From assembly GCA_002269645.1 (NCBI GenBank), contig NIVC01000558.1, positions 1-64,000 of the forward strand: a stretch of DNA of 64,000 bases, in the 5' to 3' direction. This DNA comes from Macrostomum lignano. Taxonomy: Eukaryota. Positions within the stretch are counted from its first letter, which is position 1. Each line of letters begins with the position of its first letter. Below the pieces are notes generated by a model. It did no database searches. It was not told the origin of the DNA and saw only the letters and a list, made by a program, of their open reading frames with translations. Of this stretch, positions 6,472 to 63,983 are shown one piece after another. Both the position numbers and the translations under genes were made by a program.

Positions 6472-7223
<752 letters not shown>

Positions 7224-18221: not shown

Positions 18222-20404
18222 ATGATATTAAAGTTTGTCACCCACTGCATTCTGGTCGGTGCCGCCATGGCCCAAGCGTTGAATGGTGCAGGTAAGACAT
18301 TAGATTAAATTTTCTAGAGATTTTATCTTTAGCCATAACATCACTGCAAGTTCTCAAATTTTTGCAGAGTACTCGACTGACCCAGTGGAGTCGCTGAACT
18401 CCACTGCTCCGATTACATCAGCTGGTGGAAGCAGCGACATTCACTGCACTGTGCAGTGCTCGGCCGCTGGAGCCGCCGTCTGCGCCGCCACCGCCTACGT
18501 GGAAGAGACTCGGGTGTGCCTGTTCTCAGGCGTGAGCAATGCGGACTTCTCTGCTGCCGCTCGAGCAGCACCGTCTTCCGTAGGGTGAAAGGTGCGTTGT
18601 CAATATAACGGAGAAGCAGTTATGCGCCTTTGAAGGAGCTTAGTTAGTTTGCAAAGGAGTTTCGGGTACTCACCATTTCCAATGTCCAGCTATATGCCTG
18701 AGCGCGTATGAACACTTTAGAGAGGCAACTTCTCTCAAGCAGGGTGTAGAGTTGCCCTGAATTTCTCACCTTATAGACAGTGTACACACTAGGTGCCTTG
18801 AAGGATAATTTCTGCACCCAAACCCTTAAATTGTTCACTGTAGCTATTTAAAAACTTCGATGTCTCAGTAACTTTTTATCACCGATTTTCTGCCAGGTCC
18901 CAAGCCAGATTTGGGGTACTACGTGATGCTGAATAGGACTCGTACGAACGTGCAAATGAGTTTTGCTAGAAACTGGACAGAGTACGAAAACGGATTCGGC
19001 GATGGAATCGACGTGTGGCTTGGTGAGCATTATCTTACGTCATGGCTGCTACCACAGCGTTTTTTGTGCCTAGATGAATCTTTTTGCCCGTTTTATTCGA
19101 TTTTCGGTTGTCTTCGATGAGTTAGCCATACCAAGAGACCATTCCTTTAAGACAGATTTAGGGGCTGTTTCGCAGAGGCTGTTTTGAAATTCAAGGAGGT
19201 TTGAAATCGGGTGACTATTATAAACGAGTGCAAATAAAGTGTTTAAATTTTAAAGATGCGTTAAGAATTCAAATTTTATAGCAACCTTTCGGTTTCCTAG
19301 TTGGTTTTTAATGCGTCAAATTAGGTGCAGTGCATAGAGTCCAGCAGAGTTCATAGAGTCCAGCAGAGTTCATATTCACCATTGGCTAACAACTGAAATC
19401 GTCAGGCAATTTGAATTATTTCACGAACATCAAACTCCAAGCATCCAGTTACGCATGCATTCACTGTCCTATCTCTTCTTTCTGTTCACCAGGCTGATTT
19501 CAGCGTACAGTCCCCTTTGCGCCATTCTTTACTTAAGCCATGTCTTCGATGTTCTGTGGCCCAACTTGCTCGCAGTTAAAAACCCAATTGATTTCTGTTG
19601 TCTATGGCTTGTCTGTGTAAACTATCTGCTACGTCTCAGCCTGCTGACGGCCACGCATCAAATTAACAGAACTACCAGTGGGTGGGGGCAACCGGCTATC
19701 TGACAATTTTTTGCTGCGCCGTACATGAACTTCAAGAACACGGGCTAACTTTTTGTTGCCACCTTCTCAAACAAAAATCAAGTCGCCAGCCCTCGGGACC
19801 ATCGAGATATTCTACGATTCTGCCAGAAGGTCGGATTTTCCCATAAGCTCTAGTGTATTCACGACACCCCTGTGAGTGCATAAGCACTGCGCTTCAGTAC
19901 AGCAGTGAAGAAAAAACCAAATAGGACGCAAAAAGGTAAATGTTCACATGAAATGACTATTTAAGGCAATTGCAATTTCTTTTAGGACTTCGGAGAATTC
20001 ACGAACTGACTGGAAACACGCCCAGGAAACTGCGAGTAGAAGCTGTCTTCACATCCGGTGTTCTCCACGTATACGAGTACTCCGGATTCTCCGTGGGCAA
20101 CGCCAGCACAAACTACCAAATGACTTTCGATTCATTTTTGTCGGCGAGCTCCAACTCATCCTATGATGCCATGACGCACCACAAGGGAATGCAGTTCTCA
20201 ACATTTGATAGGGATAACGATATGTTAGCATCCTCTTCATGCTCGCAGTCCCACGGTAATGTCGGCTGGTGGTTTAAAAGCTGTTACTATGCTCTTCCCA
20301 CGGGAAAAATATCCACATCTCATACTGGTGACTACGTTTACATTAACTGGTACGACGAATACACTTGCAACCACATTAAAATGTTATTGCTAGACCTAGA
20401 CTAG
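18222..20404 (+). pseudogene. PAN-FReD paralog G1 (signal peptide-PAN/Apple-fibrinogen C-terminal domain, no Thr stalk), 1-nt frameshift in exon 2
   Basis: join(18222..18291,18368..18591,18897..19022,19986..20404), all GT-AG phase 1; exon 2 is 224 nt vs 225 in paralogs; FReD motifs FARNWTEYENGFG..WLG, GMQFSTFDRDND, GWWFKSC. Confidence 0.85.
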
Positions 20405-22902: not shown

Positions 22903-24174
22903 ATGATATTGAAGTTTTTCATCCACTGCATTCTTATCGGTGCCGCCATGGCCCAGGCTTTGGATGGTACAGGTGAGACATTCGATTTAGTTTCCTAGAG
23001 ATTGCATATGTTGTGTCTCGACCTAATGGCCGCTGGACGGGTCAGGGTTCGGGTCCTCCCGCCTAAGACACCCCGGTCCCAGCCCTCTACCCCGGCTACT
23101 CCTACGCGCCCTTCGCTCGGCTCGGCGAGAGTTCGCCGGACCGACCACCCTGAGATCAGCGAGTGTTCACCGGTCCCAGGTCCCAACCAGCTCCCGGCCC
23201 CACGCGGCAACCCAGGAGAAGAAAGCACGCGCTCACCTCTGCGTTACAGACTTATTCGCGAAGCGTTTATTGGCGAAGCGTTTATTTGCACGAAGCAGAA
23301 TAATCAGCGATTGCGGGATTCACGAGTTATTAGCTTGCAGAGAGCAGTTTTGCAGAGGGACGCCGACGAACGGGATAGAATACAAACAAAAAGAAAGAAG
23401 CATGGAGCGCAGCACGCTCAGGGCTAGCCATTAAATAATATTTACACAAAAAAGGGGGGAGGGGTGGGGCAGAATGGAGAGGGCGAGCCAAACCCTGGGG
23501 CCCAGCCAGCTTATCAGCCAGCCAGCCAATACGAGCAGCCCCAGGGTGAGGCGGGCAAAGAGGGAGGGGGTAGGGTCAGCACCCAGATTGGACAGAAGTT
23601 GGGCCGGGGGCTGAGTGCAGAAACGGGTAGGCCAGGGTTAAGGCTTACGCCTCTCACAAACCCTGGCCCTGGCGCGAGACGGGGGACGGGGCGGGGTGGC
23701 AAGAAAACTGAAAACACAATCACTGGAAGGACGCAGCCCAACACATCTTTATACGATGGCATCAATGCAAGTTCTCAACTATTTGTAGAGTACTCGACTG
23801 ACCCAGTGGAGTCGCTGAGCTCTACTGCTCCGATAACATCAGCTGGTGGAAGCAGCGACATTCACTGCACTGTGCAGTGCTCGGCCGCTGGAGCCGCCGT
23901 CTGCGCTGCCACCGCCTACGTGGAAGAGACTCGGCTGTGCCTGTTCTCAGGCGTGAGCAATGCGGACTTTTCTGCTGCCGCTCCGCGCAGCATCGTTTAT
24001 CGAAGAGTGAAAGGTATGCAAGTGCTGGGTTTTGGGGCTTGTTTGAGTCAATTTTCACAGGCAGATTGGTTACTTAGTACATTTTTATTGTAACTGGAAC
24101 TTTAGCTAATTAGGTGATTTTTTGATGCACAATTAACAGTAAATCGGAATAAATGCTTTTCTTCAGAGGAATTG

Positions 24175-24208
<34 letters not shown>

Positions 24209-24276
24209 CTACATCAACAACAACAACAACTACTACTACTACTACAACTCCTGCCCCCCTGAAAGGGTACGGATAA
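22903..24276 (+). CDS. PAN-FReD paralog G2, truncated: signal peptide-PAN-poly-Thr stalk, FReD absent (134 aa)
   Basis: join(22903..22972,23789..24013,24167..24276); frame intact to ..TTPAPLKGYG-stop; sequence then switches to the cluster's downstream flank. Confidence 0.75.
23009..23743 (-). mobile_element. Probable solo LTR (735 bp) in intron 1 of G2
   Basis: TGTTG...CAACA termini, absent from the homologous G1 intron, AATAAA motifs on minus strand; TSD imperfect (CATA/CATC). Confidence 0.6.
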
Positions 24277-27085
24277 TGATTTGATAGACGCAAGATTTTC
24301 GCAACCTATTCCCCAATAATATCTTATTTGGAGCGCACTATTATTATTATTATAAAACTATTTATTATTATAATTTATAAAACTATATCTGCGGATTTCA
24401 GTCAGTCCAATCCTACCCTAATTTTACTCTAATCTTACAGGATACACTTTGTCCACTTATGATCCCTACATTTATTGGCGTTACTCTTGCACTTATCAAT
24501 CTAGCGTTCGACTGTATTTGATCTTGCAGACACCAAATTTTTAGACTTGCTCGAAAGATTTCTGCACTCATAAGAAGTGGAGTTTCAAGTCTGAAAAAAA
24601 TTTACACTTGTCAAGCACTCACCCAAACAACTTTTTGTATCTTTCAGCAGCTTAAAACAAATAAATATTAAACAATACTATATTACAATCTATTTTTTAC
24701 GCTCGTATATTCTTCGTACTCGTCAAAAAGCAAGATTTTCTGGCTATCAGCGTATAGTAGTAATTAATGCAATCGTTTATCCTAAACTGTATATCATAAG
24801 TCCTAGATTATAAATCGAAATCCTAAATATATTGTAACGAGTCCGGTATATTTAATATTACTAGCGAAGAGAGAGTATTAGCAACGTATATCAATGGTTC
24901 AGCAGATACGTCTGTCAGTCCTGGACGATTTACTATACTCGGAGCATAAGAAATCTTACTGTCTTAGTATGAATGCGTACACTGGTGATCGGCTCTGATT
25001 ATAATTATTGTATCTCACGTACATGCTAGGTTGATCTACGTCCCAGGCTGCCACACGCTTACAGAAAAAGACTAGAACTTACATGTTAAAATTATGAGTC
25101 GCATTTCTTGGAAACGGAAACCAAATTAACAAAATACGTAATATTAAACCCTATAATAAATTACGCACGTAATCTAAACAGCTAAGGATTTGAATAAAGT
25201 TAAAATACACCATGTAAATAAACTAGATTTGAATTACAGAATTTCCAAACCGTTACAATATCATTATATGCTATCAAAAATCCGCAATCTGCAATAGATC
25301 GAAATGTTTAATGAATCCACTGCTTGATCACAGTTGCCGATTGAATTCGGTTAAGTTTTAATGTTGTTATTACTTATCATTTTTTTAAAATTCTATTAGC
25401 AATTACGGAATACTATGCCAATAAATTCAAGATCGCATAGATTGGTAATTGTTCAATTGAAATAAATGAGTGTGTGACGTTCTTGCAGGCGAGCTTGAGT
25501 GCAGACGAACTACACGTACAAGGCAGAAGTATAGCAATCCCAATTATAGTTGCGCATGTCCAGATCGAGATGCAATCTGAGACTAGTAGCTCATACGAGT
25601 TTAATGCCATGTAGTTCTATGAGAGAACTACATGTAACATTCAGCGTGCGCGGGCAAGGGGCACTCGGCAATAAAGCTAAACAGGAAACCAAATTTGAAT
25701 CAGACACACCTCTGAAAATAGATAAACAAAGTTGTAACCCAATAGGAAAATATAAGACCAAAACAGATATAGCTTTAAATATCAATTCCTAGCTTAATCC
25801 TTACTAAATCCAATTAGAAACCTGTAATATACAATCAGCGCTGAATCCTGAGCACATGCATGTAGAAGAGCACCAATACTCCAATACTGTATACAGGCAC
25901 GCACTCATGCACACGCACACATAGGGTGTACAGCGGCCCAGAATTTCTAATCGTCATGGGGTCGTGAAAGCACTAGTTTCTTTATATTTTTATCTGATAT
26001 CTTGCACCACCTTACTGCGTCCATATTAGCACAAAAACTTATGCATCCTTCTACTTGTTATTATTATTAACCGAACAAAATTCTTTTTTAACAAAAAGCC
26101 TTAATCTAACCAGCGTTAATTCTCGGTCTTTGAAAACTTTGTTAAATTGTTATCTGGCTTTGTTTTTTTATTCGCCCAACACTCAGTGTGCTCGCAATTC
26201 CTGACGTACATGTACTGAATAATGTTTCTGAAGCCAGGAGACTGAAATAGCTACTATACGTAGCAGCAAGAATTGAGAAGTCACAGAGCAGCAGTCACAG
26301 CACTCACAGCTCCACAAGGCCAAGGGAGTGAGGTTGAGGGCAAGGGACCACGTCAGGAGCCACGAAGAACAGTGCCCAAGCGGCCCTGTCGATCTGGTAG
26401 TTTCAGCTGCTTGAGATGGGAGTTCTAATACTAACCTATGTGAGAGCAAATTTTATCCAAAGAGAAAAGTTTTCAGCATCCCCTGCAAGTCTGCCTTGCT
26501 TTATAAGCCTCAGCTGACTCTAAAAAACACTGCTCAAGACGTTACTTTTGCTGCGGCTACATCTATTAGAACATGCGGGTAAAATTAAAATGCATGAATT
26601 ACTGTCCATCTTCTGATTCTCGTTTTAACCGTCAAGGAGCCTGACTGATGTACAAAGTTTCTATATAAGTATGATGCACAAGCATATACCTCGGAACAAT
26701 ATCAGAGCCAAACTGAAATTCTGTCTCTAGAATAAATGACATGCAACATGACTCCCATGTGCATGTAAATGAGGGGGGGGGGTGGTTTATGAAATTTTGT
26801 GGTATGAATAGGATGTGGTAGCAGCCTCGGTCACAAAATCTGTGACTCATGGATTTTCATGCTTTCGCGATCGACTGACTCCCAGTTTTGCAAGCTGCAC
26901 AAAATCACACAAAGTATTTTTCTGTAGTCGCTTTTGCACGACTACAAAAGAGTCATTTATTTCGCACGATCAATGGAAAGGAAATCCAAGATCAGATAGT
27001 TAAAAAAGTTTGCTTTCACAAAAGAACTCAGGGTAAAAATTTTGCTTCAAGTTCTTTTATTCTTGCAACGGCAGCACAACCAATA

Positions 27086-28040
27086 CCTGCAGTGACCAAT
27101 GCCTGCAGTGACCAATGCCTGCAGTGACCAATGCCTGCAGTGACCAATGCCTGCAGTGACCAATGCCTGCAGTGACCAATGCCTGCAGTGACCAATGCCT
27201 GCAGTGACCAATGCCTGCAGTGACCAATGCCTGCAGTGACCAATGCCTGCAGTGACCAATGCCTGCAGTGACCAATTCCTGCAGTGACCAATGCCTGCAG
27301 TGACCAATGCCTGCAGTGACCAATGCCTGCAGTGACCAATGCCTGCAGTGACCAATGCCTGCAGTGACCAATGCCTGCAGTGACCAATGCCTGCAGTGAC
27401 CAATGCCTGCAGTGACCAATGCCTGCAGTGACCAATGCCTGCAGTGACCAATGCCTGCAGTGACCAATGCCTGCATTGACCAATGCCTGCAGTGACTAAT
27501 GCATGCAGTGACCAATGCCTGCAGTGACCAATGCCTGCAGTGACCAATGCCTGCAGTGACCAATGCCTGCAGTGACCAATGCCTGCAGTGACCAATGCCT
27601 GCAGTGACCAATGCCTGCAGTGACCAATGCCTGCAGTGACCAATGCCTGCAGTGACCAATGCCTGCAGTGACCAATGCCTGCATTGACCAATGCCTGCAG
27701 TGACTAATGCATGCAGTGACCAATGCCTGCAGTGACCAATGCCTGCAGTGACCAATGCCTGCAGTGACCAATGCCTGCAGTGACCAATGCCTGCAGTGAC
27801 CAATGCCTGCAGTGACCAATGCCTGCAGTGACCAATGCCTGCAGTGACCAATGCCTGCAGTGACCAATGCCTGCAGTGACCAATGCCTGCAGTGACCAAT
27901 GCATGCAGTGACCAATGCCTGCAGTGACCAATGCCAATGCCTGCAGTGACCTATGCCTGCAGTGATCATTGCCCCTGGAGTAAACAATGCCTGCAGTGAT
28001 CATTGCCCCTGGAGTAAACAATGCCTGCAGTGGTCATTGC
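27086..28040. repeat. 16-bp satellite (GCCTGCAGTGACCAAT)n
   Basis: Period 16 read directly. Confidence 0.97.
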
Positions 28041-29975: not shown

Positions 29976-32900
29976 ATGATTCGCGAAATTCTTCTCGCCT
30001 GCGCCTTGGTCTGCGCTGCTGCAGCGAGTGACCTTGACGGCACAGGTAACAGCTTACGGTGACTAATTTATTTACCAATTGTAAAAATTCAACGCGAAGG
30101 TGAACCAAAAATTCGTTGCAGAGTACTCGACTGATCCTGTGGAGTCGCTGAACTCCACAGCTCCGATAACATCAGCTGGTGGAAGCAGCGACATTCACTG
30201 CACTGTGCAGTGCTCGGCCGCTGGAGCCGACGTCTGCGCTGCCACCGCCTACGTAGAGGAGACACGAGTGTGCTTGTTCTCAGGCGTGAGCAATGCGGAC
30301 TTCTCAGCTGCCGCTCCGCGCAGCACCGTCTTCCGAAGGGTGAAAGGTTCGCAATTGCTGGGTTTCGGAGCTGATTTCATTCAATTTTTATAAGTGGTTT
30401 GGCTATTCTGTAGGACCCTTTTGTGGCAGCTGATACATTAGTTACGACAGACGTCCGCAAAGTAGTGTTATTTTTCGTGTTGCGGACATTTGGTAAGTTG
30501 CACTGACACAAGTTTGGTGGCGTTCAAAAGCGACAAGTCTTTTTTTATAAATTATTTAAACTTCAATCAATTTGAGTTTATATATCAAGAGATATGTGTA
30601 TTTAAGTATAAAAAGATCGGTCATTGACTTACAGAACCTATAGACACCTAAGCTGTCTCGGCAGAACAACTGTCTGAAAAAAATTATCGATTGCCACTGA
30701 GCAGAATGCTAATTTTAACAGATATTTGAGCTTCTGAAAGTCTACGAGCAATCTCCCTCTACGAGAGCGCGTTAGTCATGTTAGAGAAGAAACTTGCCGC
30801 TTTCAAACGACACCAAACTTGTGTCAATGCAACTTGCCAAACGTCTGCAACACGTAAAAGTAACACTATTTTCCGGAATACCTTTAGTTAGTTAGTTAGT
30901 TAGCAGGGCGGTCCGAAGACGCAGCGGGGAGGCGAGCGTCGCCCATTCCGCTAATCCCTGAAAGACCCGCATAGGCTAGGGCGCGGGGCCAGTCAGGGAG
31001 GTCTGCCGGTCCTGTCTGCAGCGTTGTCTTCGGTGGGGAAGACGGAGGCTCGCTTGGTGGCCCACAGGAACCGGATGAGCCGTGGGATATTCTCGGGCCG
31101 GCAAGCGTCGTCCAGGGACGGGTTGGGCCCGAGGTGGTTGAGCCGGTCTCGGTTGAAGGCCGGACAGTAGCAGACAAAGTGCTTGGCGTCTTCGTTCTCT
31201 AGGTTGCAGAAGGGGCAGAGTTCGCTCCGGCGAACACTTCGGAGGAAGCAATGCCTGGCAAAGCAACCGTGACCTGTGAAGGTCATAATGAGAGCCCGGA
31301 TATCTTTTCGATTTTTGTTCAAAAGGATTCTCCGCAGCTTGAGGGACGGATTAGGCACTGCCGCACGGAATTGGCGGCAGTTGGAAATGCCACCCCATCT
31401 GCGCAAGTGCAGGATGTCCGCCCAGCCGTTAATCTGACGATTAATGACCGTAGCGGGGATGGGAGCAGAGGCACGGGGCCAAGGAACGAGCCAGAACTAC
31501 CCGCCTTGGCGAGGGAGTCGGCGAGCTCGTTACCTCTGAAGCCGGCGTGTCCTGTGATCCACGTGAGCCGGACGGAGTTTCTCCGAGCCAGCTTGTTGAG
31601 CTGCCCGATACAGTCGCAAACTGTTCGGGAGTTCGTAGTGGTGTGACAAAGGGCCTGCAAGGCGGCCTGGCTGTCAGAGTGGTAGAAGATTCTGTTGTCC
31701 TTGAAGTCCCTGCAATGGAGCTCAGCTGCACAGGAGCTGATGGCAAACTTCATTCTGGAAGACGCTGGAGAGTCTGCCAGTGTGTTGGGCGTGAGTGGCG
31801 ATCACGCGGCCGTTGATAAGGATGCAAACTCCAAAGTCAGATATACCGTCTTTGGAGATCCGTCAGTGAAGCAGTGAGCCTCCTGAGGGGCCCAGCTGTC
31901 GTCGGCGTTTTCCCTAGAGGGGATAGTGACCTTGAAGCGTTGGTAGAGATTGAGGGAGCGCGGCTTACAGTCCGAAAGGACAGCCGCACTTCTACTCTCC
32001 TCCAGAACTTTAAGGCACAGGTCAGAGTGCGGCAGGAACTTGCGCTTCGCCATCGCTCTTTGTGGCTTGAAGCTAACGCCAGCCTCGATGAGCCGGCGGG
32101 TAGTTTTAGCACCCTCGCGACGGACGAAGATGTCCAGGGGCGGGAGGCAGAGGAAAGCATTGAGGCCGTCAAAGGGTGCAGAGAGCGGGGCATTCAGGAT
32201 CATGCGACACGCACGTCCCTGCACCTTTTTGAGGGCTTCGTGGCAGGTTTTAATCTGCAAAGCGCTGGTCCAGACCAGGCCGGCGTAAGTAACGGCGGGC
32301 CGGACCATTGCGGTATAGATCCACCAGAGCCGCTTCGAAGTGAGGCCCCAGGTGGTGCCGACGGCTCTGCACAACTGCGCAAGAATCGCGAGGGCTTTTT
32401 TGGTTTTGGCCTGAACGTGGGTGGACCAGCTCAGCCTGTGGTCGAGCGTAACGCCGAGACACTTGGTTTGCTTGCAGGATGGGATTTCCACCCCCCGTAA
32501 AGCTTTAGTGGCCGAATACGCAGTTGACCCTGCTGGTGAACATGATCGCGACAGTTTTGGTCTCAGAGAGTCTGAGGCCGCATCTGTCCGCCCATTGTTC
32601 AGCAGAGTGAATAAAGTTTTGTAGAAGATCCCTAAGGGTTTCAGGTGACGGTCCGGATGCCACGGCTGTGACATCATCGGCGTAACCGACCTTAAGGATG
32701 GGGTCAAGATGGCTGTCCCTAAGGAGCTCATCGATGACCATGTTCCAGAGAAATGGAGAGAGAACACAGCCTTGGGGCTGCCTTTGCAGACGGTTACCGT
32801 CCGTTGGTGGCCCAGCAGGTGCGCGGTGGCAGTACGGTGGCTGATCATATACATGATCCACCGGGTGAGGTGCGAGTGGGTTCCTCTAGCACGAAGAGCT

Positions 32901-34748
32901 CTGTCAAAAGCCTCAAAGAGGACATTATCGAAGGCTCCAACAATGTCGAGGAAGACAGCGAGAGCGTAGTCATTGCCAAGAATGGCTTTCTACAGCATGT
33001 CGACCAAGACGTGAAGCGCGTCTCCGTGGACCTGCCTGCCCGAAAGGCTGAGCGGCTTGTTCTTCACTTCCACAGAGAGGAGGCGCCAGAGCACCAGTCT
33101 CTCCAACAGTTTCACCAGTGAGGAGGTGAGGCTGATAGGCCTGAAGGATTTAATGGACCGGTAGTCCGGTCGGTTGGGCTTGGGGATAAAAACCACCTTA
33201 GCCTCGGTCCAGGGTTTCGGAACAAAGCCGAGAACATGGCTTTCAGGAGCCAGCAAAGGTTCTGCAGGAAACCGGTGCATTTCACCACCTCTCGCAGGAA
33301 GGCTGGCAGGAAGTAATGATTGAGTCAGCCAGTACGTGTCCGCCCACTGAATGATCAGGGGGGTAGGGCCTGGCTATCTCGTTCGGGAAAAACGCTGTTA
33401 GCATCGCTTCCAGTGTTTCTTCTGGGTTCTCAGTGAGCGAGCTGTCGGCTCTTTTAAGGATTCCTAGCTCTCTCCCGGAAAACCCTCATAATCAGTTGAT
33501 TAAGAAATGCAGAATTATAGTGAATCTGAATGAAAGTTTTTTTATGATTCTTTAAGAGGAATTGACAACAACAACTACAACTACTACTACCACTACGACA
33601 ACGACAACTAGTCCTGCTCCCGGGTACCATGTGCTGCTGAGTCGCACAAGACTCACACTGAGCTTTGCTCGAACTTGGACTGAGTACGAAAACGGCTTCG
33701 GCGATGGAGTGGACGTGTGGCTCGGTGAGACTTAGGGCTCAACAGAAACTACCTTGACTAACTTACTTTAGTATTAAAACGCAAAACATTAAAACATTTG
33801 TTTTTCTGAAATCTTGGTGACAAAGTGCCGGGAGATATACTTATCATCGACCCTTTAGCAGGGCGATGACTTTTAATATGTTATGATGACTCATATGCCG
33901 ACCTAAAGGTTAGTACAATTTTAAGTAGCAAAAACTCTTCAAAAAAAATTTAAATTTTTATTACATCAGCTCTACTGGGCAGATGTACAACCGACAGCTC
34001 AGTCGCAGCAATTGCGTGGCGCATCTGAAGGCTGCGTACGGCTGTTCAGTCCAAGGACTGGGGGGTTGCCACATACACCTTGAATTACCCTTGAATTGTG
34101 AACTGGAGCAATGCAGAGTTAAGTGTCTTGCTCAAGGACACATTGTACCGAACTGGGTCGAGAATCGAACCCCCGACATTTCGGTCTTGGGTACGACGCT
34201 CTAACCACTAGGCTACAACCCCTTGTAGACCAATTTACATGTAACACTCGCTGTTTGATTTGTAGACTTGTACTAAAAAAAGACATTTTTAATCGCCACA
34301 GCAAGCTTTATGCTTATCCAATCTTGTATTAAAATCACTTGATTCAGGCCTGCAAAAAATAAATGAGCTGACTGGGAGCACGCCAAGGAAGCTGAGAGTG
34401 GAGACTGTGTCCACTACTGGCGTTCCGTACGTCGACGAGTATTCCGGATTCTCCGTGGGCGATGCCAGCACCAACTACGCCATGACCTTCGATGCTCATT
34501 TGACGGCCAGCTCAAACACAACTGGCGACTCGCTCACCTATCACAAAGGCATGCAGTTTTCCACCATGGACAGGGATAACGATCAATCTTCCACTTCTTG
34601 TGCCTCGCTATACGGTAATGGTGGCTGGTGGTTTAAAAACTGCCATTACGCTAATCCTACAGGAGGCACTGTCTCCACTCACAATCCCTACATTTATTGG
34701 CGTTATGCTAGCACCTATCAGTCCAGCATCCACATATATTTGATTTAA
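29976..34748 (+). CDS. PAN-FReD paralog G3, intact (signal peptide-PAN-Thr stalk-FReD, 287 aa)
   Basis: join(29976..30045,30122..30346,33557..33724,34348..34748) = 864 nt, open; GT-AG phase 1 introns; PAN-type HCTVQC..C..TAY....CLF; FReD motifs conserved. Confidence 0.9.
30883..33474 (-). mobile_element. 5'-truncated non-LTR retrotransposon with RT, RNase H and C-terminal CCHC finger (I-group, LOA-like), degenerate
   Basis: RT (GCVLSPFLWN, YADD), RNase H (FTDGS, SDSQAAL, WITGHAGFRGNELADSLA), CPFC..H..C; (CTAA)n tail; TSD CCGGAA[T/A]ACC at 30873-30882 and 33475-33484; several frameshifts. Confidence 0.92.
33972..34222 (-). mobile_element. tRNA-derived SINE with CORE-like segment, intron 3 of G3
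   Basis: Minus strand GGGGTTGTAGCCTAGTGG (A box) ... GGTTCGATTC (B box), then GTGTCCTTGAGCAAGACACTTAACTC resembling the MIR/CORE domain; 3' boundary approximate. Confidence 0.75.
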
Positions 34749-48620: not shown

Positions 48621-48980
48621 GGACTGGTTTTGGTTTCTTTTGTTTTTCGTTTTTCTGCTTTTGGGGGAGCAGTGTTGGGGTTGTACTTTGTTTCACTGTC
48701 TGTTTCTCTCTCTCTCTCTCTCCCTCCCGTGACTGATCATTATTGCGCGCTATCGTTTTACCCCTACCCGTTTGTGCATTTGCGCTTGCCAGTGTGCGTG
48801 GTTTTAACTCCCAGCCAATCAGAGGGTGTTTGTCTATTGATGTACGTGGTATCGTGTCTTAAAGTCAAATATATACGTTCGTCGCTTCGGTAGAGTTCTT
48901 TTCAATTGTATGTCTCCTTCGCTTGCAAATATGAGTTGACTCAGTTTTGCCTAGCCCAACATCTTGGCGTCGCAAGCAGG

Positions 48981-51900
48981 ATGAGCATCAAACTGAGAGA
49001 GACGCTGCCGTTGAGCAACATAGATGAGCTTCGCGCTTGGGTTGAAGTGTTTCCAGATCCAAAGAAGTCGAAGATACCGATGAGAGACTAGCGCTGACCA
49101 ACGCTTTCATGGGCTGCCTCGGGGTCGCTGAGCTCATCAAAGTCAAGCAGCTGGTGGCTCCAAAAACCCCGTCTGAGATGAAATGGTCTGAAATCAAGCA
49201 ATGCCTACTGGCGTTTGTGGAGCCCAAGAAGAAACTGCAGATTGCTGAAAGGACAGCCTTCATGTCTATGCGCCAGGCCGAAGGCGAAACCGTCACCAGC
49301 TATGCCGCTCGTCTCAGGGAGCAAGCCGTCGTTTGCGAGTTCGAGAGCCTGAAAAAGGAGGGAGCGGACCCCGCTGAAGTTCATCAAGATGCGGCTCATG
49401 GCCGGTCTGGCCAACTCGGAAATCAGGAACAAGGTGCTCGAGCGTGAAGTGACTCAAGAACTGACGGTCGATCAGGTCACAGAATATGTTCAGCAGCTGC
49501 AGATGGTCAGCAACTTTTCAGCTGGGTCCCTGGCTGCTGCTCGCTCGACTCCCGTGGATTCGATGGTGCACCAGGCTAGGTCGCTGTCGACCGCGGGTCT
49601 GACTACGGCTGATGAAGCTCACTGCCACCCAGATAGCTCCGGCTCTGTCAACGTTAAATTGGTTATGAGGCAGAAGCAGAACTTCGGACATCAGCGCTGT
49701 CAGCGTTGCGGGTTTGGATCGCACCAGAAGCCCGATGACTGCCGAGCCCCGAGAGCCACCTGCAATCAATGTGGAAAGCCTGGCCACTTTGCCCGTGTGT
49801 GCCGCGGTGCCAGGACCCACTTCGCTGTCCCAGCTGAAGCAGTCGGCACTCAGCTGAGTCCAGAAGACTCCTATCGTGATGAGCCCGTATTCTACTGTGG
49901 AGAAGGGAAGCCTGCCGAGTTCTGCACTGTGAAAATCAATCACAGAGAAGTACAGATGGAGAAGGACAGCGGTGCATCCTGCTCGTTAATCTCACGAAGG
50001 ATCTGGAATGAGCTCGGAAGGCCCCCGCTGAAGTCGGCGAAGTCGCGCATGCTGGCGTATGACGGACACGTTATGAGACAGCTGGGCGTTCTGGAATGCC
50101 TGGTGGAGACCACTGCCAAAAACGGCCGCTTCAAGGCGGCAGAGCTGCCCGTCATCGACTGCCAACAAGAGTTTGGGCTGCTCGGCCGGAATCTGCTGGT
50201 CCTCGCGCCGGTGCACCATGCCAGTTCTGATGAGCCAGCTGCCAGCAACAGGTATGAGAGCTTGTTGGGAATATCTGGTGCTACAGGAGAGATCCGTCTT
50301 TGTGCAGGAGCTAGGCCAATTTTCCAGGCAGCTAGAGAACTGCCCTTAGCGCTGAAGCACTTGGTTAAGAAGGAGCTGGACCTGATGGAAAGTGCTGGAA
50401 TCGTTGAGAAGGTGATGTCGTCGGAATGGGGCAGTCCAATTGTGGTGACGGTGAAGTCAGATCGGGCATCCGTGAGAATTTGTGGAGATTATTCGGCTGT
50501 TAATCGGTTGGTTCAAGACCAGACCTTCCTCACTCCCTCGATTGAGACAGCCTTTTCGAAAATGGCCAACAAGAAGCTGTTCTGTCGGCTGGACCTATTG
50601 GATGCGTACTATCAGGTTCCCCTGGATGAGGAATCGAAGGCGGTGACCACCATAAACACTCCTTTTGGTTGCTACAGGTTTAACCGGCTGCCGTATTTCA
50701 TTAAGGTGTCGCTATCTGTTTTTCAACGTGTGATGGAAAAGCTCCTGGGAGACCATCCATGTGTCATAGTATATCAGGACGATGTGCTGATCGGTGCTGC
50801 GAGCCGGGCAGAGTTGCAGAAAATCAGGGAGCAGGTGCTCAACAAGTTAAAGGCAGCCAACGTCAAGATCAACGAGGCGAAGTGCGTGATGGAAGCCAAC
50901 AGCCTGAAGTTTCTTGGTCACATTATTGATGATGAAGGAATAAAACCGGATCCCGGCATGGTGAAACGTGTGATGGATGTCGAGGTGCCGAAGACCAAGA
51001 AAGATTTGGAGAGATTTCTAGGACTGGCTCAGTTTTATGTACGGCTTGTTCCAAACTTTTCTGAGAAATGTCGGCCTCTTCAAGAGCTTCGCCGCGGAGA
51101 CCGAGTCTTTGAATGGAACGCGGTGGTTGAGGCGGCATTTTCGGAAGTCAAGAGGAGTCTGGCCTCAAACCCGTGCATCAAGCCGTTTGATGTTTCCGCG
51201 CCTGTCTGTCTTCGAGTCGATGCGAGCGAGAAGTCATTGGGCGCGGTGCTGGTCCAGTCTGGACATCCCGTCATGTTCATGTCCAGGGCGCTCACACAGG
51301 CAGAAACCAACTACTCGAACATCGAGAGAGAAGCGCTGGCTATTGTTTGGGCGGTTGAACGAGCTCGGAAAATGTTGCTAGGGAAGAAATTCATCCTGCA
51401 GACCGATCACGAGCCTTTGAAGTTTATTCTGAATCCTTGCAAGAATCTTCCAAAGACTGTTTCTGCCAGACTAACCCGATGGGCTCTGCGGCTGTCAGCG
51501 TATGATTACGAGATTGAATATGTGCCGGGAAAGAAGATGCAGGATGCTGACGCTCTATCAAGGCTGAGCTTTGAAAACCTCGATCCTGAGACTGAGTCGG
51601 TTCACCAGACTGAGTTGATCACTGACGGAGGCTTGGTTACCGTGGAGGAGCTGAGAGAAAGTACTTCCCGGTGTTCGTTGCTTCAAAGACTCCAGCAGAA
51701 ATCAGGACAGGCCGATGGGGTCAGGTCTCTCAGGTGGAGCGGCCGTACAAAGCGTGTCGGGAAGCGTTGTCTGTGGAGAACGGGCTGGTCATCCACGGTA
51801 CCAGGGTAGTGCCTCCGACCATTCTCCGGCGGCGCATTTTGGAGACTGCGCATGATGAGGTGCACCCGAGCGTGGAAAATACGAAAGCCCATGTGTCTAA

Positions 51901-52875
51901 AGAGTTCTGGTGGCCTGGACTGGATCGCGATGTCCGTCAGTTTGTTGAGCGGTGTCAGCTGTGCGCTGAAAGGCGGCCGGTGGTTCAGCGGAAAATTGAC
52001 ATATGGCCATCCGAGAGCGAGCCGTGGTCTCGGGTTCACATGGACCACTGTGAGGTGCCAGGAGTGGGCTTGCTGCTGTTGCTGTCTGCTGCATACTCTG
52101 TTTGGCCAGAAGCTGTCCAGGTCCCAGACAGGTCTTCGGGCAGTGTGCTGAGAGTGCTGAGAGTGTTGAGAGCGGTGTTTGCCAGAAATGGAGTGCCTCG
52201 GACGCTAGTGTCGGATAATGCGCCTAAGTTCAGGTCGGAAAGAGTCTCGCAGTGGCTGAACAGCGTCGGCTGCCAGGAGGTGCACACCCCACCGTACCAT
52301 CCGGCATCGAACGGGCAGGCTGAGCGGTTGGTGAGGAGTCTCAAAGGCGGGCTGAAGACGTGGACGAAAGTGGTCCCATTTGACCAGTTCCTGCAGAAAC
52401 TGCTCCTAACCATTCGAACCAGCAGGCCTAGCGGGAACCGTTCCAGCTCGCCGGACATTCTCATGTGGGGACGCCGGCTGCGCCATCCGTTGACGACGAC
52501 CGAGCAGGTGGGCGACTCCATCTGGCTGAGGGCTCGGCCTGGCACGGCTCCGGTTCCGGCCAAGTTCATCGTGCAGCACGGCCGGAACGCAGCTCTGGTG
52601 ACCTCAGCTGACCTGCCAGACGGAGGACTGCAGATGGCGCACGCAAACCAATGGAGCTGCCGCCCAGAGGCGGAGTCCGATCGGCTAACCGAGGCGGCTG
52701 GATCCGAGGATCAGGCTGGGCTATCGATTCCGGGGCCAAGGCTGGCTCTGACTCGGAGCTGCGTGAACCTGAGGTGACTGTCTGTGACTCCCCGCTGAGT
52801 TCTGGAGATGAGACTCTCCAGCCCCACCGCTCGTATGATTTGCGGCCTCGTAAACGTGTTTGTTATCAGGTCTAA
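48981..52875 (+). pseudogene. gag-pol of gypsy copy 2, near-identical to copy 1 with the same frameshifts
   Basis: ORF track repeats at +4255 with at least one SNP (ctgcacatg vs ctgcgcatg). Confidence 0.93.
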
Positions 52876-54559
52876 GGACTGGTTTTGGTTTCTTTTGTTT
52901 TTCGTTTTTCTGCTTTTGGGGGAGCAGTGTTGGGGTTGTACTTTGTTTCACTGTCTGTTTCTCTCTCTCTCTCTCTCCCTCCCGTGACTGATCATTATTG
53001 CGCGCTATCGTTTTACCCCTACCCGTTTGTGCATTTGCGCTTGCCAGTGTGCGTGGTTTCAACTCCCAGCCAATCAGAGGGTGTTTGTCTATTGTCTATT
53101 GTTTGTCTCCTTCGCTTGCAAATATGAGTTGACTCAGTTTTGCCTTGACCAACAGCATACATATCGGTAGGGTCTACATATCGGGAGGGTGCGCCTGCGG
53201 CATACATATCGGTAGCCTGCGGCGCGCGGGCGCCGAGCGCCGATATCGATACGCGTATCGATCACCTAGTGATCGGGGCGCCAGCCAATGAGAGGCGAGG
53301 AGGGTTGACACCCACCTCACCTCCAAAATCGACGGATCTACCGGCCCTTAGTAGTCCTGTAGATCAATTTACATGTAAGAGCTAGCAGTCGCTGTTTGAC
53401 TTGTACACTTGCACTTAAAAATATACATTTTTCGCCACAGCCAGTTTTATGTCTAGCCAACCTTGCATCAAAATCACTTGATTCAGGCCTGAAAAAAATA
53501 CACGAGCTGACTGGGAGCACGCCAAGGAAGTTGAGAGTGGAGACTGTGTCCACTGCTGGCGTTCCGTACGTCGACGAGTATTCCGGATTCTCCGTGGGTG
53601 ACGCCAGCACCAACTACGCCATGACCTTCGATGCTCATTTGACGGCCAGCTCCAACACGACTGGCGACTCGCTCACCTATCACAAAGGCATGCAGTTCTC
53701 CACCATGGACAGGGATAACGATCAATATTCCACTTCTTGCGCCTCGCTATACGGCAATGGCGGCTGGTGGTTTAAATCCTGTCAGAGTACTCTTCCCACG
53801 GGAGGAGCCTACTCGTCTTACGATCCCTATATTCGCTGGAGGTACGCTGGTAATGTTGAAGTGGCTATTCAAATGCTGCTGATTTAAAAACAATTTTAGC
53901 TCGAATTCGTTACTATGAAGATCATACAAGAGTGCGGTTAATGCATATAGGAGCTGTTGGTTCCTTAAGGCATGCAGACTACCCCGACGCATATAATTTT
54001 GGCTTTGTTATGAAACTACGTAATCTGTTTTTGACATAAAGCCGAAATCTAAAAAAGTCATCTTTTAGAGGATTCTAAATTCATAATACTGGTCCGTTTA
54101 AACCTTTCTAAATATCTGTTCTAGGGGAAACTTCTGCCTGTTTAAATTCGTATCACTCAACTCAATTAAAACTCCTTCTTGGAAAATCCCTAATTCACTC
54201 GATTTTTCGGAAATCTCCTGGTAGCGATTAGTGCTTAAGCGGTAAGACACTGTCTAAATTCCTAAGCTAATTCCTAAAGTATGGCGTTTTCCGTGGATCA
54301 TTGGTATCCAGCGGCAGCTGTTCTACATGTACTTTATGTCTAATGTCTAGCCCTAATTGTCTAATCCTAACGCCTAATATTTATCACTATTAGCCTGCTC
54401 GGGTTCCTTAGGGTCTTCACGACCCACCACCTTCAAGTTTCCCTATTCCAGACTCCTATTCCTGGGTCTCCACGACCTCAGTGTCCCTACTTCACAAAGA
54501 AATAATTCGAGATAAGTCTTAGTGAAAGTTTTTTATTTGAACTTCAAGCTTACTAACCG

Positions 54560-54696: not shown

Positions 54697-56654
54697 TAAA
54701 TTCGGGGGAGGGCGAACATATTTCATTGGGCGACATTCACTTAAACAAATATTAGCAAATTTATAACAAAGTTGAGAATTCAAACAAAAATATTATAGGA
54801 TAAAAACAAATAAGCAGATATTTTCTGGTTGGTCAGGATATACACATATAAGACGCAAAGTTAACTACTAATAGTAATATCGACAAGTTATACTAGCCCT
54901 ACATCATATCATTAGTAGTAGACGTAAGTTTTTCGCAACCTCCCTAATGGTCTATTTTGGCGGTGCACTAGCATAATTATAATATGCTAAATCTGCAGAT
55001 TTCAGTCAGTCAGTCGACTCAATCCTACCCTATAATCTAGTCCATACAGGGGACGCGTGCCGTCCTTTACTTACATTTATTGGCATTCACGCTAACACTT
55101 ATCAATCTAGCATTCGCCTGTATTTGATTGAACAAACACCAAATTATTCGAATGTTACAAAAATTTCAATGCTAGCAAGAACTGGAGTTTTAGGTCTGAA
55201 AAAATCTATACTAAGTATCAGGCAATCATTTTAACAACTTTAATTGTTATCTTTTCTATTCGCTAAAACAGCTAGCTGCTAAAAATGTTTATTTTCATAT
55301 ATGCATTCACATACACATTTTTCATATATGTATATTTTTATTTTATGCTTTTCTTAATATTTTATTCTTTGTACACTCTAGAAAGCGGTTTAAAAAAATA
55401 GCAAGCTTTTCTAGCTTATCCTATATCCTATACAAAATCCTATAGCTAAATCATAAATATACGTTATCAAAAAACTCACAATCAAAAATATCAATAGCTC
55501 GCAATTTCTTTACCGAGCAGCTGTTTAATCAAAGCTAAACCCAATCCCAACGTTGTTTTAAATATTTTTTATTTTGTCATAGAAACGATTGTCCTTTAGA
55601 GAGAAAAATACCGAAAATCACTGCTGCAGAGAACAATTAAGCCACGATCTTTTGTTCAAGCGGACAACCAGTTAAAGAGATCGATCCAAGCCTTAACTGA
55701 AGTCATAGGCTTTGTGGAATATACATGTATATGTATAGTAATAAGAATATAATCAAAATAAAAATAATTTCAGAAAGGCATCATGCAGGGCTTTCGGCGA
55801 ATTATCATCCCGAAAATTCTCCCCATTCCACTGACTCCTGAGCACATACAAGAGCCCCGGATACTGTGTGGGCTGGTACATGTATGCATTTATAAACATA
55901 CACTCACTCACGCATAGTGTACAGCAGCTCTAACTTACTAAACGTTAGGAATGTGCACTCAACTGTGAATTAGAGGTTTGGTGTGAATCGCAATTATATA
56001 TACTGATCTGGGGCATGCAGCTCCATCATATGCAAAATCAGCTGAACTCCATCTTAAACAGTGTGTTGGGGCATGTTTTCTTAGGCTTTGTTCTCGAGTG
56101 AAAATATTTGAAAACTTGACATTAATTTTCTTCTGGGGCAAACTAGTGGGAGAGATACTAGATACATGTACATTTCTTACATGATTGCATGGGCTCAATT
56201 CGAAGTGCAGTCACAGATAAATTGGAATCTCGGCTTGGCTCTGCTCGTGCAATCAACGTCCTTGAGGGCCAGCCCAAAAGGCAGAGTGAAGTGTATGTGC
56301 AACCACTTGGCTCCCCAACCCTTGAACAATCAACACGCTTCGATTTACTTTGAGTGTTTTTAACTGTTCTGTTTTTAAAAGAAAACATACTTGACAAAGA
56401 CTGAACAAAATACCTGATTTAAAACAAAACGAAACGTAGCAAAGACGTTTAGAGTTTTAAGCCAATAGCTGTTTTTCGTTTGTATCTGTGTATTTTTGCA
56501 TCATTATAGAGAAGTAAATGTAGTCTCACTTCAATAAATGAAAAACCGAGAGGAAACTTTTAATGTATGCATGATGACTCATATGCCGACTTAAACGTGA
56601 GTAAAATTTTATGTAGCATGAATTCTTCAAATGGTGATTCATATTTTTATTATA

Positions 56655-56811
56655 CCTGCCCCAATGGGCAGATATGTGCAACCGACAGCTCAGCAATGCA
56701 GAGTAAAGCGTCTTGCTCAAGGACACAAATTGTTCCTACCAGTAGGTCGAGAATCGAACCCCCGACCTTTCGGTCGTAAGTGCGACGCACCAACCACTAA
56801 GCTACAACCCC
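56655..56811 (-). mobile_element. tRNA-derived SINE, copy upstream of the orphan exon
   Basis: A/B boxes TAGCTTAGTGG / GGTTCGATTC and CORE-like GTGTCCTTGAGCAAGACGC on minus strand. Confidence 0.75.
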
Positions 56812-56895
56812 TATAGTAGCTAGGCTAGTTTACATGGAACAGTCGCTGCAGGACTTTTTGAGCTTCAGTTCTTCTATCATTATCACTTCATTCAG

Positions 56896-57280
56896 GTTTT
56901 AAAAAATACACGAGCTGACTGGGAGCACGCCAAGGAAGCTGAGAGTGGAGACTGTGTCCACTACTGGCGTTTCGTACGTCGATGAGTATTCCGGATTCTC
57001 CGTGAGTGACGCCAGCACCAACTACGCCATGACCTTCGATGCTCATTTGACGGCCAGCTCAAACTCGACTGGCGACTCGCTCACCTATCACAAAGGCATG
57101 CCGTTCTCCACCATGGACAGGGATAACGATTTAAGTAGCTCCTCGTCTTGTTCTAATTACTATGGAAATGTCGGCTGGTGGTTTAAAAATTGTTTCTGGT
57201 CTAATCCTACTGGAGACACTTACATTTATTGGAAATATGCTAGCAGTTATCAGTCCAGAATTCACATATATTTGATTTAA
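56896..57280 (+). other. Orphan FReD terminal exon (paralog G5), intact frame and acceptor, exons 1-3 missing
   Basis: TTCAG acceptor at 56895, GFKKIHELTGSTPRKLRV...IHIYLI-stop; upstream intron-3 sequence is fused at ~56557 to downstream-flank sequence. Confidence 0.85.
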
Positions 57281-61913: not shown

Positions 61914-63983
61914 ATGATTCGCGAAATTCTTCTCGCCTGCGCCTTGGTCTGCGCTGCTGCAGCGAGTGACCTTGACGGCACAGGTAACAGCCTACGGTGA
62001 CTAATTATTTTACCAATTATGTGAAAATGCATCACAAAGGTGAACCACAAATCCCTTGCAGAGTACTCGACTGATCCTGTGGAGTCGCTGAACTCCGCTG
62101 CTCCGATAAGATCAGCTGGTGGCAGCAGCGACATTCACTGCACTGTGCAGTGCTCGGCCGCTGGAGCTGCCGTCTGCGCTGCCACCGCCTACGTGAAAGA
62201 GACTCGGCTGTGCCTGTTCTCAGGAGTGAGCAATGCGGACTTTTCTGCTGCCGCTCCGAGCAGCATCGTTTATCGAAGAGTAAAAGGTGCGCAAGTGCGG
62301 GTTTCATTCACTTTTTATGGGCAGTTTTTTCATACTGTAGGGCCTTTTTTGGTAACTGAGACTTGAACCACGACGTGTGTCCGGAAAAAAGTGTTCTTTT
62401 TTGTGCTTCTGACGTTTGGTAAGTTGCACTTTGGTGTCGTTTAAAAGCGGCAATTTACGAGCTATTTGTTTAAAATGAATCGAATTGCTATTAATATATT
62501 TTTATATATTAAGAGATACTCGTATTTAAGTACAGGGAGATTGGTCATTGAAGGTGAGGTGAGAACCTGTATACGCACGAGCTGTGAGGAAAAAATTATC
62601 GATTGCCACTGAGCAGAATGCAAATTTCAACGGATATTTGAGTTTCTGTAAGTCTACGAGCACTCTCTCTCGCTTAAGTCATGTTACCTCGCGTACGCTT
62701 TCCAACAACTTACCAAACTTCCGCAACACAAGTATAACACTATTTTCCGTACAACCCTCATAATTAGCTGATTGATTAATGCAGAAATACAGTAAATCTA
62801 AATGACTACTATTCCACGATTTTCAAGATGAATTGACAACATTAACAGCAGCAGCAGCAGCAGCAACAACAACAACAACAACAACAACAACATCAACAAC
62901 AAGAACTGCTTCTACTACTCCTACAACTTCTGCAACTACAAATACTACTCCTTCTCCTACTCCCGGATACCATGTGATGATGAGTCGTACAGGACTCACA
63001 CTTAGCTTTGCTCGAACTTGGACTGAGTACGAAAACGGCTTCGGCGATGGAGTGGACATGTGGCTCGGTGAGACCTACGAGAGTATTGGTTCAACAGAAA
63101 CAGTTTTAACCTACGAGTAGCTTATTTTAGTAATAAAAGATAAAAACATTTAAACATTTGTTTTCCTAAAGTCTTTGTGACGAAAGATTTAATAACTTAC
63201 CATCGACCCTTTAGCAGGGCTGTGACTTTTGATTTATGTTATGATGACTCATATGACGACTTAAAAGTGAGTAAAATTTTAAGTAGCACGAATTCTTCAA
63301 ATGATGATTCATATTTTTATTACACCTGCCCCAATCGGCAGATGTGCAACCGACAGCTCAGCCGCAGCTATTGCGCGCGCATCTGAAGGCTGCGTACGGC
63401 TGTTCAGTCTAAGGACTCTAACCATGCACTAGGCTACAACCCCTTGTATATTAATTTACTTGTAACAGTCGCTGTTTGACTTGTAGACTTGTACTAAAAA
63501 AGACATTTTTAATCGCCACAGCAAGCTTTATGCTTATCCAATCTTGCATTAAAATCACTTGATTCAGGCCTGAAAGAAATAAATGAGCTGACTGGGAGCA
63601 CGCCAAAAAAGCTGAGAGTGGAGACTGTGTCCACTGCTGGCGTTTCGTACGTCGATGAGTATTCCGGATTCTCCGTGGGCGATGCCAGCACCAACTACGC
63701 CATGACCTTCGATGCTCATTTGACGGCCAGCTCAAACACGACTGGCGACTCGCTCACCTATCACAAAGGCGCTCAGTTCTCCACCATGGACAGGGATAAC
63801 GATCAATCGCCCACTTCTTGTACCTCGCAATACGGCAATGGCGGCTGGTGGTTTAAATCCTGTTTTCGTACTCTTCCCACGGGAGGAGCCTACACAGCGT
63901 CCAACGGGGCGACCGTCGATCCCTTCATTCGCTGGATATACGCTGATGAACTTCAACAGGCTATTCGATTGCTGCTGATTTAA
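61914..63983 (+). CDS. PAN-FReD paralog G6, intact (signal peptide-PAN-long Ala/Thr stalk-FReD, 316 aa)
   Basis: join(61914..61983,62062..62286,62828..63067,63568..63983) = 951 nt, open; GT-AG phase 1 introns. Confidence 0.9.
63325..63443 (-). mobile_element. tRNA-derived SINE remnant, intron 3 of G6
   Basis: Internally deleted homolog of 33972-34222. Confidence 0.6.

Follow-up and report, generated by a model that had tools for sequence, protein, structure and literature searches.

A tandem cluster of PAN-FReD genes in the flatworm Macrostomum lignano, probably a mosaic of exchanged 5' portions and old 3' cassettes

Genes that join a PAN/Apple module to a fibrinogen-related domain (FReD) are reported from molluscs, with Biomphalaria glabrata FREP1/Bg179, four genes of Crassostrea gigas, and some of Lottia gigantea named in PMC7588048, which cites Huang et al. 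2015 and Gorbushin et al. 2010 for them. Lineage-specific FReD families are a recurrent invertebrate route to recognition repertoires. We know of none described in free-living flatworms. Here we describe homologous PAN-FReD units in the flatworm Macrostomum lignano, found on the plus strand at positions 18222 to 63983 when a 64,000-nucleotide stretch of contig NIVC01000558.1 (assembly GCA_002269645.1; the window) was searched with its own pieces. From their domains, these genes are predicted to encode secreted proteins of the form signal peptide-PAN/Apple-(Thr-rich stalk)-FReD. We consider it probable that they constitute a Macrostomum-specific tandem cluster of secreted lectin-like genes that is a mosaic, made by recombination and gene conversion, of old 3' cassettes.

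The window contains five PAN exons, four exon-3 FReD starts, five full copies of exon 4, and one exon-4 tail, distributed over six units (G1 to G6) whose gene models were made by reading splice junctions. No PAN or FReD pieces beyond these parts were detected by low-stringency tblastn and family hidden Markov models (HMMs) in all six frames of the window. G1, G3, G4, and G6 have a four-exon layout with GT-AG introns and every junction in phase 1. The identical four exons, phases, and junction positions were found in a paralogue of 47% identity at a separate M. lignano locus, and the layout is a family trait. The first-pass annotation of this DNA had described six units with a single layout; the repeats are real and the layout holds for the four units just named, but not for G2, which has suffered a deletion, or for G5, which is an exon-4 fragment. 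The locus thus has two or three complete genes out of six, not six.

Only G3 and G6 read through intact, and both have good splice sites and TATA-like motifs upstream. G3 (29976-34748, plus strand; 287 amino acids) has exons at 29976-30045, 30122-30346, 33557-33724, and 34348-34748, encoding in turn the signal peptide, a 75-residue four-cysteine module (the PAN exon), a stalk of 16 Thr with the start of the FReD, and the remaining FReD (B and P subdomains). G6 (61914-63983, plus strand; 316 amino acids) has the same parts at 61914-61983, 62062-62286, 62828-63067, and 63568-63983, with an Ala/Thr/Ser/Pro stalk of about 50 residues in exon 3. The codons for the DRDND motif of exon 4 lie at 34569-34583 in G3 and at 63789-63803 in G6, and the two genes carry different exon-4 ends, designated type A (G3) and type B (G6) below.

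The other units are damaged. G1 (18222-20404, plus strand) has exons at 18222-18291 (signal peptide MILKFVTHCILVGAAMAQALNGA), 18368-18591 (PAN), 18897-19022 (FReD start, no Thr stalk), and 19986-20404 (FReD B/P with a 3' cassette type of its own). Its PAN exon is 224 nucleotides long and has a 1-nucleotide deletion (CC>C) near 18562 that leads to a premature TGA. Since the UniProt model P0029 contains G1 exon 1 and the G1 PAN exon in frame and free of the frameshift (AAAPSSTVFRRVK), this lesion may be allelic or an error of the assembly. P0029 is itself a chimera, in which exon 1 and the PAN exon of G1 are followed by the PAN exon and exons 3 and 4 of G3, each reproduced exactly. The G2 pseudogene (22903-24544, plus strand) retains a G1-type signal peptide exon (22903-22972), a PAN exon that is intact but internally chimeric (23789-24013), an exon-3 remnant of about 27 Thr followed by ...PAPLKGYG and a stop (24167-24276), and a type A exon-4 tail that has lost the normal stop (24437-24544); its deletion begins in the middle of exon 3 and leaves only the last ~29 codons of exon 4. 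The G4 pseudogene (41880-53887, plus strand; exons 41880-41949, 42028-42229, 42823-42969, and 53487-53887) has a 23-nucleotide deletion near 42197 that shifts the frame of its PAN exon, a 9-Thr stalk and FReD start in exon 3, and a type B FReD B/P exon whose open reading frame (ORF) is still open. The G5 fragment (56556-57280, plus strand) consists of an intron-3 tail (56556-56694) and exon 4 (56896-57280), and the same six-frame tblastn and HMM search of the window found no exons 1 to 3 for it. Just after its acceptor, an A-run (56901-56906) is one base shorter than that of G4, which puts the ORF out of phase with the acceptor. The S2 and S3 segments of G5 are of type A and its S1 segment is G1-like. 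We considered and rejected the open frame of G5 as a sign of selection, as about 0.8 stop-creating changes are expected on its branch by our own rough estimate and an open C-terminal block of 49 codons is unremarkable.

Exon 4 is divided by DRDND into two blocks of very different divergence. Before the motif (the N-block), synonymous divergence (dS) between copies is 0.06 to 0.15, and after it (the C-block) 0.85 to 1.5. Identity between G3 and either G4 or G6 falls from ~0.95 to random within ~50 nucleotides past DRDND and remains random beyond the stop codon. The homology breakpoint lies at 34610-34638 on the plus strand in G3 coordinates, 27 to 55 nucleotides after DRDND. Upstream of it the copies are 94 to 96% identical; downstream, the cassette types cannot be aligned, through the 3' flank. 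At least three mutually unalignable 3' cassettes are present, one in G1, one in G2, G3, and G5 (type A), and one in G4 and G6 (type B), and the 3' flanks follow the same division, being common to G3, G5, and the G2 tail and separately common to G4 and G6. Parsimony-informative sites switch at the same place, with the grouping (G3,G5|G4,G6) favored by 25 of 28 sites in the C-block and by 1 of 7 in the N-block. The mosaic is fine-grained, since the G5 segment from DRDND to the second cysteine is closer to G1 than to G3. The contrast between the two halves of exon 4 is mainly one of age. The peptide strings quoted in the first-pass annotation for G1, G3, G4, G5, and G6 after DRDND are all present as written, and the strong divergence with indels that it reported there was seen; its reading of that divergence as diversification of the ligand-binding end was not borne out, because dS is inflated as much as the nonsynonymous divergence (dN).

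The PAN exon presents the opposite picture. In all ten pairwise comparisons dS is 0.13 to 0.32, dN is 0.012 to 0.049, and dN/dS is 0.05 to 0.23, and for G3 against G6 purifying selection is supported at P = 7e-5; the PAN exon is clearly under purifying selection. As the first-pass annotation had counted (about 14 differences, about 12 of them synonymous), G1 and G3 differ at exactly 12 synonymous and 2 nonsynonymous sites, and the near invariance of the PAN protein where introns no longer align was confirmed by these ratios and by the flanking G1 introns, which are unalignable. The G1 PAN exon is 92 to 94% identical to the other copies (18362-18596 against 30116-30351, 42022-42234, and 62056-62291), and homology ends within ~6 nucleotides of both exon borders. 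All five copies are identical over a 33-nucleotide stretch in alignment columns 64 to 96 (...GGAAGCAGCGACATTCACTGCACTGTGCAGTGC...), which includes 11 third-codon positions. Both this stretch and the border-limited homology of G1 may reflect exon-limited conversion or constraint at the nucleotide level. In G2, intron 1 resembles that of G1 and intron 2 those of G3 and G4, and the matches switch inside the PAN exon, which is G1-like to about column 147 and G6-like beyond. Purifying selection as the sole cause of G1 PAN conservation is ruled out, with a PAN dS of ~0.25 against 0.6 to 2 for exons 3 and 4; given this contrast, the unalignable introns, and the junction inside the G2 PAN exon, exchange within the PAN exon contributes to it.

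We propose that three processes shape the cluster: birth and death of copies, unequal recombination, and gene conversion. Repeated exchange and purifying selection would act on the 5' portion of each unit, some two-thirds of it, and most of all on the PAN exon and on exon 4 up to its midpoint. The breakpoint just after DRDND would part this portion from the 3' cassettes, of which there are at least three, all of them old and each made up of the P-subdomain end with its own 3' flank. The outcome would be a PAN end that stays constant and a ligand-site end that comes in a few very different forms, with two or three copies functional and the others recent casualties. We favor this mosaic because of the jump in dS, the divergence of the flanks, the switch in topology, and the lack of any difference between N- and C-block in the ratio of nonsynonymous to synonymous change (given below).

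Several points weigh against this interpretation. Ancient positive selection may have created the differences between cassettes, and it cannot be assessed because synonymous sites between cassette types are saturated. The 1-nucleotide lesions of G1 and G5 may be assembly errors, which makes the number of functional copies uncertain. What the family members do is read from their domains, and the full-length fold of the truncated FReD described below was modeled on the 47%-identical paralogue (P0003), not on G3. Finally, the canonical acetyl pocket of tachylectin-5A (TL5A), ficolins, and FIBCD1 is not conserved, and the equivalents of its Tyr431 and Ala432 are not reliably alignable, so lectin activity is not to be assumed.

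The identity of the PAN module was evaluated by sequence and by structure prediction. The G3 PAN exon, which is symmetric (phase 1-1), scores 16.5 bits (E = 0.0076) against Pfam PF00024 PAN_1, below the curated cut-off of 21.4; among family members, P0015 exceeds the cut-off at 25.2 bits and others reach 20.9, 18.7, and 18.2. A profile built from the module matches the true PAN protein P0022 at E = 1.3e-6, and the automatic UniProt name of P0014 and P0032 is "Apple domain-containing protein." Four cysteines (C27, C31, C39, and C51) are invariant in 17 sequences of the module. The AlphaFold2 (AF2) model of the G3 PAN exon (pLDDT, 91.5) has strands at residues 16-20, 41-45, 50-54, and 70-73 and a helix at 24-34. 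In a Foldseek search of the PDB its top ~40 matches are all PAN/Apple folds (probability, 0.6 to 1.0; TMq, 0.5 to 0.63; weak E values of 0.009 to 0.7), including plasminogen, the HGF N domain, SML-2, MIC4, and leech antiplatelet protein. The predicted fold, the invariant cysteines, and the match to P0022 agree with the first-pass assignment and identify the N-terminal module as a divergent four-cysteine PAN/Apple domain, although the assignment is weaker by sequence than that of the FReD.

The FReD assignment is secure. Exons 3 and 4 of G3 match Pfam PF00147 Fibrinogen_C at 115.3 bits (cut-off, 22; E = 4.6e-33) over profile positions 41 to 211 of 221, and sequence matches in the PDB are to tenascin, ficolins, FIBCD1, and fibrinogen (E = 1e-25 to 1e-14). 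The AF2 model of P0003 (pLDDT, 84.8; pTM, 0.78) superimposes on ficolin-2, ANGPTL, and fibrinogen gamma over ~185 aligned columns (E of ~1e-14; TM, 0.72 to 0.74, with ficolin-2 at 0.74). The domain is without the N-terminal ~40 to 44 residues of the A subdomain and their disulfide, and PDB alignments begin at chain residue ~45, the "GGW" strand. The same truncation was found in all M. lignano paralogues, and a six-frame HMM scan of the window detected no exon encoding the absent part. The linker between PAN and FReD is encoded by ACN repeats and ranges from 0 residues in G1 through 9 (G4), 16 (G3), and ~27 Thr (G2) to the ~50 residues of G6; the Thr-rich stalk is probably O-glycosylated, judging from its composition.

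In FIBCD1, the Ca2+ site is anchored by Asp393 and Asp395, a disulfide joins Cys401 and Cys414, and the S1 pocket, conserved in TL5A and in L- and M-ficolin, is formed by Tyr405, His415, Tyr431, Ala432, and Trp443 (PMC3908420). In this site the Tyr-Ala pair precedes a G-I-x-W motif, and the aromatic residue comes after it. Each of the five exon-4 copies has the DRDND Ca2+ motif and both P-subdomain cysteines, and so does nearly every family member. HMMER alignments to solved FReDs end at "PTGG," so that only the positions Cys1+4 and Cys2+1 are placed with confidence; in G1, G3, G4, G5, and G6 these are H, Y, Y, Y, Y and Y, H, Q, F, F, respectively. At Cys2+1, the equivalent of FIBCD1 His415, other family members have A, S, G, C, F, or L, and the combination of Tyr at Cys1+4 with His at Cys2+1 occurs in G3 only among the window copies. 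The block after DRDND therefore does span the Ca2+ loop, the disulfide, and pocket positions of the P subdomain, as had been proposed, and Cys2+1 does vary across copies. The FReD may bind glycans or other ligands in a Ca2+-dependent way, with a specificity that would differ from cassette to cassette, and the proteins may act in surface, mucus, or immune recognition; the specificity is not readable from homology.

It is possible, and we hold it tentatively in view, that these are not recognition lectins at all and instead are structural or secretory proteins (of mucus, adhesive, eggshell, or seminal fluid) in which PAN and FReD act as protein-protein modules. The mucin-like Thr stalk with its very variable length fits such a role, as does the failure of the canonical acetyl-binding pocket to be conserved family-wide, and tandem families with rapid turnover are also typical of reproductive and secretory proteins. 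PAN modules, moreover, often mediate protein-protein contacts (PMC7588048). Strict conservation of the Ca2+ motif and the P-subdomain disulfide nonetheless points to a working ligand site, and the M. lignano adhesion and secretome papers that we found do not mention the family.

Diversifying selection on the ligand pocket of a pattern-recognition family, with the PAN module kept constant, is in our judgment unlikely. The replacements at Cys2+1 and the indels of up to 11 residues in the loop before the conserved Trp are what it would call for, C-block dN/dS is somewhat above that of the PAN exon, and for the pair G4-G6 it reaches 1.02, a value indistinguishable from neutral. In the last 15 codons of that pair (53839-53884 against 63935-63980; RYAGNVEVAIQMLLI against IYADELQQAIRLLLI) there are 10.5 nonsynonymous and 0.5 synonymous changes, the sole stretch with a marked nonsynonymous excess, in a sample too small to test and with a pseudogene, G4, as one member. 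Yet G4-G6 is the only pair with dN/dS near 1. All others lie between 0.26 and 0.69, most of them at 0.26 to 0.5, and dS is raised as much as dN. The ratio of nonsynonymous to synonymous change does not differ between the N- and C-blocks of exon 4 (Fisher P = 0.75 for G3-G6 and 0.49 for G3-G5), and the C-block is below neutral in both pairs (P = 0.015 and 0.011, respectively). An elevated C-terminal dN/dS, as the first-pass annotation had expected, was thus not found. Its placement of the variable residues at the pocket holds for Cys1+4 and Cys2+1, which differ between copies, but inter-cassette divergence peaks outside the pocket loops, in the C-terminal strand that follows the conserved Trp, and runs on into the 3' flank, and the topology switches at the breakpoint. 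Positive selection at the C-block is not demonstrated. For the proposed diversified pattern-recognition (or mucus/adhesion) family, the combination of signal peptide, PAN, and FReD is supported; the C-block statistics speak against directed diversification.

Decay of most of the cluster, with the C-terminal variability reflecting relaxed constraint in pseudogenes and having no functional meaning, seems to us quite improbable. Disabling lesions in three or four of the six units, transposable elements in introns, the neutral-like C-block of G4-G6, and the near equality of nucleotide identity between G3 and G5 in the C-block (0.74) and in the 3' flank (0.73) are consistent with it. Against it stand the intact G3 and G6 with their splice sites and upstream motifs, the ORFs of all five full exon 4s, which are open, and the C-block of G3 against G6, two intact genes with different cassette types, where dN/dS is 0.33 and below neutral. 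PAN dN/dS is low even in damaged copies, which implies that the lesions are recent. That the G5 and G2 tail fragments, in which a frame is still open and an acceptor usable, are donor cassettes or alternative terminal exons, with patchwise conversion re-assorting the ligand end of the expressed genes, is highly improbable, though if true it would amount to a germline (or even somatic) FReD cassette system with a logic like that of chicken pseudo-V gene conversion.

Outside the window, the PAN-FReD family appears, from sequence searches, to be confined to the Macrostomum lineage. All close protein relatives are uncharacterized M. lignano models, and a search of 1.84 billion representative proteins with the PAN-module profile returned 17 matches, nearly all of them M. 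lignano proteins with a PAN-like module and a FReD. Genome-wide, the family forms about a dozen or more clusters when grouped at 50% identity, and the best non-flatworm sequence match is an Anopheles FREP (P0009). No mention of a PAN-FReD family was found in a search of the literature on Macrostomum, including M. lignano adhesion and secretome papers and gene-model names; the family had not previously been characterized. P0003 lies on M. lignano contig NIVC01001037.1. Directly upstream of it, at 8076-9101, is an unannotated, damaged PAN-FReD copy whose last exon is split between two frames, and a further PAN-like fragment lies downstream at 13646-13954. Besides P0029, several public models are faulty: in P0001 and P0005 the N terminus of an amiloride-sensitive channel is fused to PAN-FReD, P0015 merges three tandem units, and P0019 and P0025 extend into genes that are unrelated or belong to retroelements. 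Several UniProt and ParaSite models of the family also contain frameshifted stretches.

Besides GT-AG introns, the window contains retroelements and many minisatellites. A degenerate non-LTR-type retroelement remnant with reverse transcriptase (RT) and RNase H fragments lies on the minus strand at 30900-33300, inside intron 2 of G3 (Pfam RVT_1, E = 8.5e-13 at 32505-32861; RNase_H, E = 1.9e-8 at 31319-31753), and breaks the homology between G3 and G6 from about 30880 to 33470. Intron 3 of G4 holds, on the plus strand at 44426-53094, a tandem long terminal repeat (LTR) retroelement of the form LTR-internal-LTR-internal-LTR, with LTRs at 44426-44584, 48673-48839, and 52928-53094. Its two internal units are 99.75% identical and its long gag, protease, RT, RNase H, and integrase ORFs are open, so it is a very recent insertion or duplication and may still be active. 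Just upstream of G5 exon 4, at 56700-56810, is a tRNA-like sequence in minus-strand sense (...ggtcgagaatcgaacccccgacc...); because ARAGORN calls no tRNA there, it is probably a remnant of a tRNA-derived short interspersed element. A 16-nucleotide minisatellite (ACCAATGCCTGCAGTG) occurs upstream of both G3 (27079-28032) and G4 (38896-39229) and is therefore part of the duplicated intergenic unit. Upstream of G1 are two arrays of a 20-nucleotide GC-rich minisatellite (AAGAGACAGGGGCGCCCACC; 4522-4663 and 16609-17446). Positions 1 to 4007 form a ~4-kb satellite of a 15-nucleotide G-rich unit (TAAGATTCGGGGGGA; ~277 copies; extreme GC skew, ~0.77), and a perfect (TAGA)188 microsatellite of 752 bp with 100% matches lies at 6472-7223. 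Two adjacent minus-strand ORFs at 7230-8252, of 119 amino acids (with a signal-peptide-like start, MSFYKNIISLVQLLLCAFVASSC..., and several cysteines) and 207 amino acids, have no Pfam match at E of ≤0.01 and look like exons of an unrelated secreted protein.

A lesson of wider use follows from the locus. Recombination of old cassettes, with homogenization elsewhere, can produce a "conserved end, hypervariable end" pattern, and dS and flanks should be checked before positive selection is inferred. It also exposes several chimeric public gene models of the family. M. lignano is a laboratory model with RNA interference and transgenesis, which makes this compact family tractable, and the family offers a way to learn which ligand is bound when a FReD is without its A subdomain and what role the PAN partner plays.

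Compared with known systems, the M. lignano genes most resemble the mollusc PAN/Apple-FReD genes, and the combination is not new in kind, those genes having already been reported (PMC7588048). Both groups have a PAN/Apple module and a C-terminal FReD, are lophotrochozoan and (by prediction, in the flatworm) secreted, and were found by genome annotation, with no function assigned. FREP1 of B. glabrata also has an IgSF domain and a coiled-coil interceding region, both of which are absent from the flatworm proteins. The latter also differ from the mollusc proteins in being without the N terminus of the A subdomain and in having, in some copies, a Thr-rich stalk. The PAN-profile search of 1.84 billion representatives returned no mollusc PAN-FReD protein, which argues against a close relationship, and independent exon shuffling in mollusc and flatworm is likely. 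The FREPs of Biomphalaria, a diversified family of snail immune lectins with one or two IgSF domains upstream of the FReD, are likewise multigene and partly in tandem, pair the FReD with another kind of N-terminal recognition or oligomerization module, and owe part of their diversity to gene conversion. However, they are reported to diversify mainly in the IgSF region, including by somatic events, whereas in the flatworm it is the end of the FReD P subdomain that differs, all evidence comes from the germline, and Pfam matched no IgSF domain in window proteins or family members.

The flatworm proteins resemble ficolins, TL5A, and FIBCD1 in their B and P subdomains, in the Ca2+ motif, and in having a Cys-Cys bridge by which the Ca2+ site is connected to the S1 pocket. 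In contrast to these lectins, they are without collagen, coiled coil, and a complete A subdomain, and S1 residues (including Trp/Tyr443) are not conserved; no Gly-X-Y repeats occur in any gene model of the window, where the linker is (Thr)n/Ala/Ser/Pro. The PAN/Apple modules of plasminogen, HGF N, Sarcocystis SML-2, Toxoplasma MIC4, and leech antiplatelet protein are alike in their strands-helix-strands order, two disulfides (four cysteines), and predicted fold, although sequence similarity is marginal, with the window copies below the Pfam threshold and Foldseek E values weak. The apple domains of SML-2 and MIC4 bind galactose. Insect FREPs (FBNs) of Anopheles and Drosophila are, like the present genes, lineage-specific tandem FReD expansions with birth-and-death evolution, but they have a complete FReD, usually preceded by a coiled coil or by nothing, and are without PAN and mucin stalk. 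New here are the Macrostomum-restricted family, the shortened A subdomain, a mucin-like stalk carried by one subfamily, and the documented mosaic of cassettes.

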